Of a stretch of 64,000 nt of DNA, positions 35,404-37,083 are shown in pieces. The notes under the pieces were generated by a model that was given only the letters and a program-made list of their open reading frames with translations, ran no database searches and had not been told where the DNA came from. The position numbers were made by a program, and so were the translations under genes. Numbering within the stretch: the stretch's first letter is position 1; every line of letters starts with the position of its first letter. The stretch is from Orbicella franksi (taxonomy: Eukaryota): positions 9,114,001-9,178,000 of the forward strand of contig OZ116702.1 in assembly GCA_964199315.1 (NCBI GenBank), given 5' to 3'.

Positions 35404-37083
35404 ATGAATTTCCCAGTGTTGTACACGTTACTGATGCTTTGTGCTCGGTCTTCTGAAGGGAAACCAGCTCAACCTTTGCTGACATTCAACAGTGAAACCG
35501 AAATGTTTGAGTTGAACAATGATCTTCTGCTTGAGATCGCAGAGCTACAGCGACCAATACGTGTAATTGCTGTTGTTGGAGATGCAAGAATTGGAAAATC
35601 GACCACACTCAACTTGATCAAACACATCTGGAGTGGAGCGAATCAAACCTACATCGAAGAAGTTTTCAAGACGGGCGATACATTCAGACCTGTCACGCGT
35701 GACGTGTGGGCTCAGGTTATTCAGCCCCGTGACGAACAAGGCGGAAACGTTGTGTTACTGGATGTTGAAGGTACAAATTTAGGAGATGATGCTCTCACGA
35801 CTCACTTGAGTATGTTCACAGCCCTGGTATCATCCGGTTTAAACTTGTTTGTCCGGGAGATGGTTCAAAATAACAACCTGCACTTCCTGTTTCACATGTC
35901 ACGTTTGAGTGATCTTGTTTTCCCAAGCATTAGCTTGGAAAACTTTCCAAAACTACAGGTAGTCATCCGGCAAGGGTCACTTAAAGATCCTGGGGAAGGA
36001 AAAACCATCGAGGATTACACAAGAGATTGCATAGTGGAACCCTCCTTCCAAAAAAACATGAAAGAAGAAAGGCAGATCATTGCTAAACACTTCCCAAGGA
36101 ATCAAATTTCTGTCATCCAGATTCCGTACCTAGAAGAGAGGGAACGGAATTTGTTGAGTAATTTTGACAAACTCAGTAAATTGCAGTACTGGGGTGTCAT
36201 GGAACGTTTAGTTGAAAAGTTCAAGCAATTTCCAGTAAAGAAGACACTTGGAGGAAGTTACATAGATGGCCAAGCGTTGGTTGAACTCACTGTTAGATTA
36301 ACAGAAACTATGAACAAAAACTCGTGGCCTGATTTTGGGAGCGTTTATGATACGATAGAAAAGAATATCTGCAGTAGAAGTTATATCAAATTCGTTGAGC
36401 CACTATTTGCTGAATTGACTGCAGACATAATAGAAACCAAACTGGAAAACACTTTGAGGGCGTTTAAAATGGAATGCGTTTTGGAAAGTGAAATTGCCGC
36501 TGCTCAGGAAGATCTACGGCGCATTGTTGAGGAAAAGAGGAAAGTCGAGGAGCTGGAACGGAAGGCGAAGGAAGCGGAGAGTGAGAGAATAGCCGCGGAA
36601 AAGAGACGCGAGGAACAGGAAGAGAAATTTCAACATGAACTGACGATCAAAGAAGATCAGATCGCAAAGGTAAAGAGAGAAAAGGAAGCAGCTGAGTTGA
36701 AGGAAAAGAATCTTAAACAACTTCATGAAGAACAACTGAGAACCATTACTTTGCTTCAGCAGCAACTAAGTAAGAAAAGTAGCAGCTGGCTTGACATCAT
36801 CGTACCTGTTGCAGCTGTAGTTGCTGGGGCAGCTTTGAGTGACAGGGATTTAAAGCGAAACATAACCACCGTTCCCCACTCTCGTTACAGCGCAATTGGA
36901 CTCAAGGCCGCCTGCTGGGAATGGAATGAAATCGCTAACAAAACCTTTGGACTGACCGGAGAGGAGTGCGGCGTGATCGCACAGGAAGTAAAGAAGTTGT
37001 ATCCATTCGCCGTTACCAGAGGAAAGGATCGCTACTTGCTGGTGCGATATGACATGTTACACCAGATTATGAGCTCTTATTAA
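35404..37083 (+). CDS. GBP-like/S74 family copy 3 (intact): signal peptide, GBP-type GTPase, coiled coil, hydrophobic tail, peptidase S74
   Basis: ATG at 35404 (the ORF track starts upstream at a TTG). Signal-like MNFPVLYTLLMLCARSSEG; G1 GDARIGKST; G2 VTRDVW; G3 LLDVEG; tail WLDIIVPVAAVVAGAAL; S74 SDRDLKRNI at 36838, then CGVIAQEV..LYP..V..GKDRYLLVRYDML. Confidence 0.92.
   Translation: MNFPVLYTLLMLCARSSEGKPAQPLLTFNSETEMFELNNDLLLEIAELQRPIRVIAVVGDARIGKSTTLNLIKHIWSGANQTYIEEVFKTGDTFRPVTRDVWAQVIQPRDEQGGNVVLLDVEGTNLGDDALTTHLSMFTALVSSGLNLFVREMVQNNNLHFLFHMSRLSDLVFPSISLENFPKLQVVIRQGSLKDPGEGKTIEDYTRDCIVEPSFQKNMKEERQIIAKHFPRNQISVIQIPYLEERERNLLSNFDKLSKLQYWGVMERLVEKFKQFPVKKTLGGSYIDGQALVELTVRLTETMNKNSWPDFGSVYDTIEKNICSRSYIKFVEPLFAELTADIIETKLENTLRAFKMECVLESEIAAAQEDLRRIVEEKRKVEELERKAKEAESERIAAEKRREEQEEKFQHELTIKEDQIAKVKREKEAAELKEKNLKQLHEEQLRTITLLQQQLSKKSSSWLDIIVPVAAVVAGAALSDRDLKRNITTVPHSRYSAIGLKAACWEWNEIANKTFGLTGEECGVIAQEVKKLYPFAVTRGKDRYLLVRYDMLHQIMSSY

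Follow-up and report, generated by a model that had tools for sequence, protein, structure and literature searches.

Large GTPases of the GBP type encoded in the genome of the coral Orbicella franksi begin with hydrophobic leaders of a kind that would send a protein into the secretory pathway, and relatives with comparable leaders occur across the cnidarians. The genes lie in a stretch of 64,000 nucleotides (nt) (assembly GCA_964199315.1, contig OZ116702.1, positions 9,114,001 to 9,178,000 of the forward strand), referred to here as the window, where the family forms a tandem, mixed-orientation array of single open reading frame (ORF) genes in seven copies, c1 to c7. Secretory routing of these cnidarian-wide GBP-like GTPases is considered the best reading of their sequences, and probably the correct one. 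The parts of copy c3, around which the evidence is arranged, are as follows.

35404-37083, + strand: c3, intact ORF of 559 amino acids
35404-35460, + strand: leader MNFPVLYTLLMLCARSSEG, the first 19 codons of the ORF
35461-36273, + strand: GBP-type large GTPase domain, residues 20-290 (PF02263, 32.9 bits)
35950-35990, + strand: G4 region around the residue-191 column, which reads VVIRQG and has no Asp
36274-36483, + strand: helical middle domain, residues 291-360, holding Cys323 and Cys358
36484-36750, + strand: long helix rich in E, K and R, residues 361-449 of the AlphaFold2 (AF2) model, presumed to be a stalk or coiled coil
36787-36837, + strand: Gly/Ala-rich hydrophobic stretch WLDIIVPVAAVVAGAAL, residues 462-478, directly before the cleavage Ser
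36838-37083, + strand: Peptidase S74 or intramolecular chaperone auto-processing (ICA) domain, residues 479-559 plus the stop codon (PF13884, 32.8 bits)

The six copies that retain an N-terminus share one leader plan, namely a Met, a short n-region, a hydrophobic core and a polar end in G or S with small residues at -3 and -1. In c3 the n-region is MN, the core is FPVLYTLLMLCA and the c-region is RSSEG, with putative cleavage after G19. The remaining five are listed below with the residues that follow them.

30250-30318, + strand: c1 leader, ending in RVTCG and followed by KKAQIIL
34623-34522, - strand: c2 leader, ending in TTVQG and followed by KKAELFL
46740-46675, - strand: c4 leader, ending in VACLDS and followed by PPAKPLL
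47900-47977, + strand: c5 leader, ending in LGAHG and followed by QTAQPLL
55832-55761, - strand: c6 leader, ending in SVARG and followed by SAAKILL

A previous sequence-only reading of the locus had reported hydrophobic leaders on all six of these copies, quoting the endings VTCG, TVQG, SSEG, GAHG and ARG, and a conserved start directly behind them. The endings are all correctly quoted, the start is present in every copy and can be written (K/Q/S/P)-x-A-x-x-L-L, and the leaders were recovered when a simple heuristic combining n/h/c structure with the (-3,-1) rule was applied to c1-c6. By this heuristic, the uncharged cores measure 8-22 residues with a mean Kyte-Doolittle hydropathy of 1.7-3.4, and at least one permissible cleavage site falls at the leader boundary in six of six copies. 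All six also show what is expected of Sec-type signals at the extreme N-terminus (an n-region, a hydrophobic core of 7-15 residues and a polar c-region), with long cores of 21-22 residues in c5 and c6 and a core of eight residues in c4, whose leader contains an interrupting D and R. For c2, whose ORF has a single Met, and for c6, if read from the first Met of its ORF, the n-region is long and basic; as homologues of c6 start at an internal Met (MSCSLLF...) and are without its 34-residue extension, this extension is probably untranslated. In all six copies a purine occupies -3 relative to the leader ATG, and the reading frame is closed by a stop codon 12-114 nt upstream. In the AF2 model the c3 leader is a detached helix (residues 3-15) with a predicted local distance difference test score (pLDDT) below 50. 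These traits support the view that the leaders are built like eukaryotic signal peptides of the cleavable type.

The leaders are not peculiar to the window. A word-indexed search returned 157 relatives, including members from Orbicella, Montipora, Oculina, Acropora, Porites, Stylophora and Desmophyllum, and essentially every N-terminally complete model among them has a comparable leader. A HMMER scan, exhaustive over 1.8 billion representatives, gave 47 representatives below 1e-30 before the matches fell to ordinary GBPs at 25-30% identity; the family is thus small. Leaders are kept in members down to about 30% identity, and a start of Met plus leader is found in more than 100 independent models from three cnidarian classes. 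Sea anemone members with the same end-to-end architecture are Nematostella LOC5515806 (nvGBP-806) and Actinia tenebrosa XP_031562879.1, and a jellyfish member, the Aurelia gene model Seg1023.3, shares this architecture and clusters with the family protein P0137. When the count was limited to homologues having sequence N-terminal of the conserved core, a strongly hydrophobic 9-mer was present in that region in 135 of 163 homologues with an ARxGKS P-loop, against two of 21 proteins with P-loops of other types, both of them family members with degenerate P-loops; none of the canonical YRTGKS-type GBPs scored. The leader is therefore more than a chance feature.

The boundary of the leader is equally regular. 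When 67 non-redundant leaders are lined up by the Ala that is nearly invariant in the mature start, the residue three before this Ala (-1) is G in 21, A in 15 and S in 10, or one of these in 46 of 67 (49 of 67 if G, A, S, C and T are all admitted); the residue five before it (-3) is small or aliphatic (A, S, T, G, C, V, L or I) in 53 of 67, and -2 is mostly Q, E, R or K. With its constant spacing from the fold, a boundary of this composition shows the von Heijne (-3,-1) pattern. The family profile aligns its position 34 with residue 11 of human GBP2, and since the profile begins at this GBP2 residue, the leader is an add-on outside the GBP fold. It also evolves differently from the rest of the protein. 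Between c3 and its orthologue in a related species (contig L005), the ratio of non-synonymous to synonymous substitution rates (dN/dS) is 0.22 for the whole gene and 0.14 for the GTPase domain, and c3 is under purifying selection, whereas in the leader, over 19 codons and hence few sites, dN exceeds dS. The earlier remark that the leaders diverge in sequence while keeping their property agrees with this comparison.

The same reading had named a coding exon spliced in upstream as the event that would remove the leader. Acropora paralogues are represented by 11 short contigs from 11 samples, which start 53-134 nt upstream of the leader ATG; seven Logan runs represent one paralogue, and two JGI samples and two Logan runs the other, from A. 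palmata, the raw data being perhaps partly shared. All are colinear with the genomic locus and unspliced, with nested 5' ends. The seven contigs of the related species have an in-frame stop at -27 and one out-of-frame upstream ATG at -62, and six of the seven share one 3' end. The 5' leader of the A. palmata contigs contains no ATG, the first being that of the leader Met. Of the two A. palmata 5' ends, the shorter has a TATA-like ATAAAAG about 30 nt ahead of it. The simplest reading is that the Acropora paralogue mRNA is unspliced and that in A. palmata its first AUG encodes the leader Met. Transcript evidence bearing on the upstream-exon concern comes from an Acropora paralogue only. Four JGI contigs (L001-L004) are 99.8% identical to c3 and colinear with the genome. 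They were considered as transcripts marking the start of transcription and rejected, as L001-L003 end at the poly-C run 34821-34840 and just before the poly-G run 37873-37885, and assemblies break at homopolymer runs. L004 covers 35340-37810 and ends about 35 nt past an AATAAA, a weak hint that it represents an mRNA with a 64-nt leader. Contigs L005, L018 and L019 were likewise rejected as evidence on splicing, being colinear genomic sequence.

Behind the leader, domain, structure and profile comparisons place the protein in the GBP/atlastin class of the dynamin superfamily. The PF02263 domain scores 27.8 bits in c2, 32.9 in c3, 39.1 in c4 and 29.8 in c6 (cut-off 21.1) and went undetected in c1 and c5 in the Pfam scan. 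The AF2 model of c3, built with 47 homologues, has a mean pLDDT of 81, with a single long helix over residues 361-449, a disordered segment at 445-478 and a confidently folded S74 domain. In Foldseek its first 400 or so residues matched GBP5, GBP1 and GBP2 on top (E-values 1e-16 to 1e-13), followed by RNF112 and atlastin-1, and the matches of the family profile to solved structures include GBP2, GBP5 and GBP1. Pfam, Foldseek and the hidden Markov model alignment hence agree with the dynamin-class label first given to the protein. In c3 the nucleotide-binding motifs are GDARIGKST (G1), T98 (G2) and DVEG (G3). In an alignment of 47 sequences, no substitution occurs at G59, G64, K65, S66, T67, T98 or D120, and R62 and G123 are each found in 46.

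The fourth motif is altered. The Asp of the RD G4 motif, which in GBP1 contacts the guanine base, is lost in 46 of the 47 aligned members: the residue after the conserved Arg is G in 25, S in 11, T in nine, N in one and D in one, and the profile's 'lrg' aligns with 'LRD' in human GBP2. Within the window only c2 and c4 keep RD. Because the guanine-specifying Asp is gone from most members, nucleotide specificity may be relaxed or may differ from that of GBPs. The earlier point that a GTPase outside the cytosol needs a source of GTP is valid, and it is sharpened by this loss.

At the other end, PF13884 scores 32.2 bits in c1, 32.8 in c3 and 36.8 in c4 (cut-off 22). S479, D480, L483 and K484 are invariant in 47 sequences, the motif S-D-x-x-L-K is found in 82 distinct homologues, and the protein ends 80-100 residues past the cleavage Ser. 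Pfam found GBP and S74 domains only, with neither the NDT80-type DNA-binding domain nor the downstream transmembrane helix of the MYRF type. The stretch before the S74 domain is Gly/Ala-rich, 12-20 residues long and preceded by basic residues, and is kept in the 82 distinct homologues; in c3 its AF2 pLDDT is about 30. Its maximum Kyte-Doolittle hydropathy over 19 residues (KD19) has a median of 1.15 and reaches at least 1.6 in nine of 38 members, compared with 3.05 for the C-terminus of the family relative P0152 as positive control. The stretch is thus not a membrane span in 29 of 38 members, and KD19 gave no general C-terminal transmembrane helix of the atlastin, DdGBP or AtGBPL2 type among these 38. 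As it is too short and too polar in most members, the whole chain should cross the membrane if the leader drives translocation. A pattern resembling a glycosylphosphatidylinositol (GPI) signal, [K/R][K/R] followed by an S/G run and W, fits the c3 and Acropora clades and fits the c6-type clade poorly. P0152 itself, which lies outside the window, has a leader and a GBP domain, strongly hydrophobic C-terminal spans and an RHD3/Sey1 Pfam match, and no S74 domain; judged by this arrangement, it may link the family to the signal-peptide-plus-transmembrane GBPs of Dictyostelium and plants.

Signs of the compartment can be sought in the cysteines and glycosylation sequons. Cys323 and Cys358 occur without exception in the family, even at about 30% identity, and are not kept as a pair in leaderless GBPs. 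Cys504 and Cys522 lie on neighbouring strands of the S74 domain, and in 103 distinct domains both are present in 83, both are absent in 20 and none is mixed. Relative to shuffled sequences, N-glycosylation sequons are 1.22 times as frequent in the family and 0.76 times as frequent in leaderless GBPs, a modest enrichment among members that are not phylogenetically independent. The cysteine patterns, the sequons and the absence of a second span in most members, taken together, favour an oxidising and glycosylating compartment.

From the observed leader anatomy and conservation, domain architecture, catalytic residues and cysteine patterns, a course of events can be inferred that covers cleavage, lumenal location, trimerisation, the function of the tail and the nucleotide used. 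The N-terminal 19-26 residues would act as a cleavable signal peptide, signal peptidase cutting two residues before the nearly invariant Ala, so that a mature start such as KPAQPLL would form the first strand of the GTPase. With no later segment hydrophobic or long enough in most members to halt translocation, the chain would enter the lumen of the endoplasmic reticulum (ER), where the conserved cysteines would pair. By analogy with tailspikes and MYRF, the S74 domain would assemble chains into a trimer along the helical stalk and would then cut itself off at the invariant Ser-Lys dyad, leaving the Gly/Ala-rich hydrophobic tail at the C-terminus of the mature GTPase. The product would be lumenal or secreted, most likely as an inducible antimicrobial effector acting on the non-cytosolic face of membranes or on microbes. 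In its full form, a classically secreted trimeric GBP whose three heads are assembled by the S74 domain, whose self-cleavage unmasks the tail, and which coats or attacks microbes or symbionts in the lumen or outside the cell with another nucleotide or one pre-loaded, this proposal is speculative and on present evidence somewhat improbable. The unmasked tail could replace the farnesyl anchor of mammalian GBPs, whether it is fusion-peptide-like, tail-anchor-like or GPI-signal-like.

Several observations weigh against secretory routing. The invariance of G1-G3 means that the protein presumably needs a nucleoside triphosphate, and such nucleotides are plentiful in the cytosol and scarce outside it. 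Some leader cores reach 20-22 residues and could be anchors, 30 of 37 leaders passing the KD19 threshold. In MYRF the S74 domain functions facing the cytosol. For the window copies, the matching public contigs (L001-L005, L018 and L019) provide no proven RNA. On the tree, as few as two or more changes suffice to explain the S74 cysteine pair, which the basal clade (c4, nvGBP-806, Aurelia and Actinia) lacks, and with so few changes its 83/20/0 distribution was dropped as decisive evidence; the co-occurrence is supportive only. Finally, predicted signal peptides were already known from two groups of GBPs, DdGBP of Dictyostelium and the AtGBPL2 clade of plants. For DdGBP a proteinase K assay on fusions to green fluorescent protein (GFP) was read as showing a cytosol-facing GTPase (PMC12040241), and AtGBPL2 has been treated as an atlastin-like protein of the cytosolic face (PMC12489281). 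These precedents lower both the novelty of the finding, which the sequence-only reading had implied to be greater, and the confidence in a lumenal GTPase: its claim of routing out of the cytosol stands as far as leader anatomy, fixed boundary and compartment hints carry it and is weakened by what is known of GBPs with signal peptides. Nothing in the present evidence supports the nematocyst or the symbiosome, two of the compartments that the sequence-only reading had suggested.

The same precedents bear on the explanation in which the leader is not cleaved and serves either as an N-terminal anchor, N-out/C-in as in P450 enzymes, or as a monotopic helix, leaving a cytosolic GTPase on the ER or other endomembranes with no difficulty of GTP supply. 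Several leaders do have cores of 16-22 residues with uncharged N-flanks and basic C-flanks, KD19 is at least 1.6 in 30 of 37, and the invariant G1-G3, the cytosol-facing DdGBP, the ER- and tonoplast-associated and functionally cytosolic AtGBPL2, and the real C-terminal spans and RHD3/Sey1 match of P0152 all agree with it. This arrangement is nevertheless thought unlikely. Many leaders are too short for a bilayer (a core of 12 residues and KD19 of 0.69 in c3, a core of eight in c4 and of about 12 in Nematostella), and an anchor gives no reason for small residues at -1 and -3 or for a polar c-region at constant spacing from the fold; Cys323, Cys358 and the paired S74 cysteines are hard to account for in the cytosol, the sequon enrichment speaks against it, and the DdGBP assay, given where its tags were placed, would not strictly locate the G domain. 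A more elaborate topology, distinctly improbable, would combine an N-out leader anchor, a cytosolic GTPase and stalk, a second span in the pre-S74 stretch and a lumenal S74 domain only. Basic residues would then lie on the cytosolic side of both hydrophobic segments, as the positive-inside rule asks, the GTPase would have access to GTP, and a lumenal S74 domain suits its Cys pair and a conserved N-I/V-T sequon. The putative second span, though, consists of 12-17 uncharged Gly/Ala-rich residues, often with a Pro or Asp inside, and its KD19 values are those given above (median 1.15, at least 1.6 in nine of 38), falling to 0.4-0.8 in the c6-type clade; Cys323 and Cys358 would be cytosolic, and the -3/-1 pattern would again be left unexplained.

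That the leader is an artefact of the gene models, with an upstream coding exon spliced in or another start used so that it is not N-terminal, is very improbable. The sequence cag|G stands directly before the c3 ATG, some RefSeq models, from Orbicella and Montipora and the newer one from Nematostella, have 12-26 extra N-terminal residues from an upstream in-frame ATG, and the contigs matching the window offer no proven RNA (L001-L003 ending at homopolymers, L005, L018 and L019 being genomic). Set against this are the upstream in-frame stop and the purine at -3 in every copy, the recurrence of the Met-plus-leader start in the more than 100 independent models of three classes, the unspliced Acropora contigs with the leader Met at the first ATG of A. 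palmata, and the single-exon structure of the genes throughout. Mitochondrial or other organellar targeting is the least credible alternative, hardly to be entertained. OPA1 and Mgm1 are dynamin-superfamily GTPases processed by mitochondrial proteases, and a comparable leader would place the protein in a nucleotide-containing organelle. Dynamin B of Dictyostelium is reported to be a further mitochondrially processed GTPase of this superfamily (PMC3142549). The leaders of the coral family, with uncharged cores, few or no Arg, no amphipathic pattern and then a c-region of the von Heijne type, do not resemble such signals. Secretory routing by a cleavable signal peptide is thus preferred to all of these.

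The other copies at the locus show how variable the family is around this plan.

30250-32001, + strand: c1, intact ORF of 583 amino acids with leader, S74 domain and degenerate P-loop
33208-34623, - strand: c2, ORF of 471 amino acids with leader and intact P-loop, without S74 domain
45046-46740, - strand: c4, intact ORF of 564 amino acids with leader, GBP and S74 domains
47900-48439, + strand: c5, shortened copy with leader and degenerate P-loop GDAKVDKRM
about 54318-55832, - strand: c6, with leader, GBP domain and an S74 domain containing an in-frame stop
63447-63880, - strand: c7, 3' fragment with the end of the stalk, hydrophobic stretch and S74 domain, a stop and a frameshift, and no N-terminus

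The P-loop of c1 reads GDERGHTLATL, without GKS, and its GBP domain escapes detection by Pfam. Its orthologue in another species, P0146 (598 amino acids, 81% identity), likewise has no GKS P-loop, so that c1 looks like a conserved, catalytically dead paralogue, or pseudo-GTPase, and not a decaying pseudogene. The c2 ORF stops directly after SDSKVN, the first residues of the S74 domain, and orthologues of like length (P0072, 462 amino acids; P0127, 481 amino acids) suggest that this type may be a conserved form without S74 domain and hydrophobic tail. Copy c4 falls in a basal clade with nvGBP-806, to which it is 36% identical over its full length; it retains the G4 Asp and has no S74 Cys pair. 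Copy c5 is probably a pseudogene. The stop in c6 (54474-54476) takes the place of the otherwise invariant S74 Trp, beyond which the reading frame extends to about 54318. Copy c7 shares about 79% protein identity with c3, and a poly-C run of 17 nt is found not far from its 5' end.

The c3 unit is bracketed by a 20-nt poly-C (34821-34840) and a 13-nt poly-G (37873-37885), both also present in L005; as terminal inverted repeats of a mobile unit they were not convincing, and this idea was rejected. About 650 bp of the c3 3' flank (37082-37737) is missing from L005, which resumes at 37738, the length difference being an insertion in the window or a deletion in the L005 species. In A. palmata, the genomic locus L013:1451-8158 holds several family copies and fragments in mixed orientation, and tandem arrays of the family therefore recur across corals. 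Elsewhere in the window, whose G+C content is about 40%, a single-ORF TRIM-NHL-like gene of 690 amino acids (4073-6145, + strand) has Pfam matches to a B-box, a coiled coil, a filamin repeat and six NHL repeats. Three ORFs of 175-179 amino acids each (57264-57791, - strand; 58070-58597, + strand; 60557-61096, + strand) look by eye like putative retroelement remnants; in Pfam the first and third had no match and the second only a sub-threshold one. Positions 24973-25102 are 130 N, an assembly gap or a masked stretch.

GBPs are central effectors of cell-autonomous immunity and are understood to be cytosolic machines that coat pathogens from the cytosolic side. The GBP branch, its member nvGBP-806 and the presence of predicted signal peptides on GBPs are already known; no description was found of a cnidarian-wide, immune-induced family that combines a leader and S74 autoprocessing with the lack of a span and of the G4 Asp. 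If the proposal is right, a conserved immune-induced branch in cnidarians would show that GBP machinery is able to operate in a lumen or extracellularly, which would raise the question of which nucleotide is used and from where it comes, and the phage tailspike chaperone domain would have a second eukaryotic use besides MYRF. The locus is tandemly expanding and fast-diversifying, a candidate for a role in pathogen defence or in the handling of intracellular symbionts, and nvGBP-806 is available in a tractable model as an already known cGAMP/NF-kB responder.

Literature searches returned no paper joining Peptidase S74 with GBPs and none joining coral GBPs with secretion, and no proteome match; a homology search with a further protein, P0226, found only itself. 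The closest characterized relative is nvGBP-806 of Nematostella vectensis, described as a putative antibacterial GBP induced by 2'3'-cGAMP in an NF-kB-dependent manner, together with secreted effectors that include nvDae4, lysozyme and LBP (PMC8713801). This co-induction with secreted antibacterial proteins agrees with the secretory reading. It (LOC5515806; XP_032241428.2 / A7RXK0) has the same leader, GBP domain, stalk, hydrophobic stretch and S74 domain, and aligns with c3 and c4 over the full length at 34-36% identity (E-values 1e-90 to 1e-105); the main text of PMC8713801 makes no mention of a signal peptide or S74 domain on it. It differs in having no S74 Cys pair and in being named as a single locus, in contrast to the seven-copy tandem array of the window. 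Vertebrate GBP1, GBP2 and GBP5 are the best structural and profile matches and share the internal Arg of the P-loop, the switch-I Thr and DxEG; they are interferon-inducible, so that an immune-induced context is common to both groups. They are, on the other hand, cytosolic, with no leader, C-terminal CaaX prenylation and an RD G4 motif, whereas members of the coral family carry a leader, are without CaaX and terminate in a self-cleaving S74 domain, and most of them have lost the G4 Asp. Atlastin, Sey1-RHD3 and RNF112 have by fold comparison the same GBP-like G domain and helical bundle, but are cytosolic GTPases with C-terminal span anchors, no leader and no S74 domain.

Leaders on GBPs have their precedent in DdGBP of Dictyostelium (Q54TN9), which has a predicted N-terminal signal peptide (PMC12040241), and in the plant AtGBPL2 clade, with a signal peptide and three transmembrane helices and a location in ER and tonoplast (PMC12489281). 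In the DdGBP fusions GFP lay upstream of the leader or after the C-terminal span, from which we infer that the assay does not strictly locate the G domain. Both DdGBP and AtGBPL2 end in one to three real transmembrane helices, whereas the window proteins have no convincing span and an S74 domain instead. For the latter, MYRF/MrfA and the phage endosialidase tailspikes provide the comparison, having likewise a C-terminal S74 domain with a Ser-Lys dyad, and a local match (GVIAQEVK..P.AV) links the coral domain to the MYRF ICA structure 7dc3. Its expected role is trimerisation followed by self-cleavage (PMC3742443 and PMC8326128). Eukaryotic use of S74 besides MYRF-type factors was not found in the literature searched. 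In MYRF, the domain is cytosolic and stands after a DNA-binding domain and a beta-helix and before a transmembrane helix. That of the window proteins is preceded by a GTPase, a long alpha-helix and a short hydrophobic stretch, and most scleractinian clades have acquired a pair of cysteines in it.

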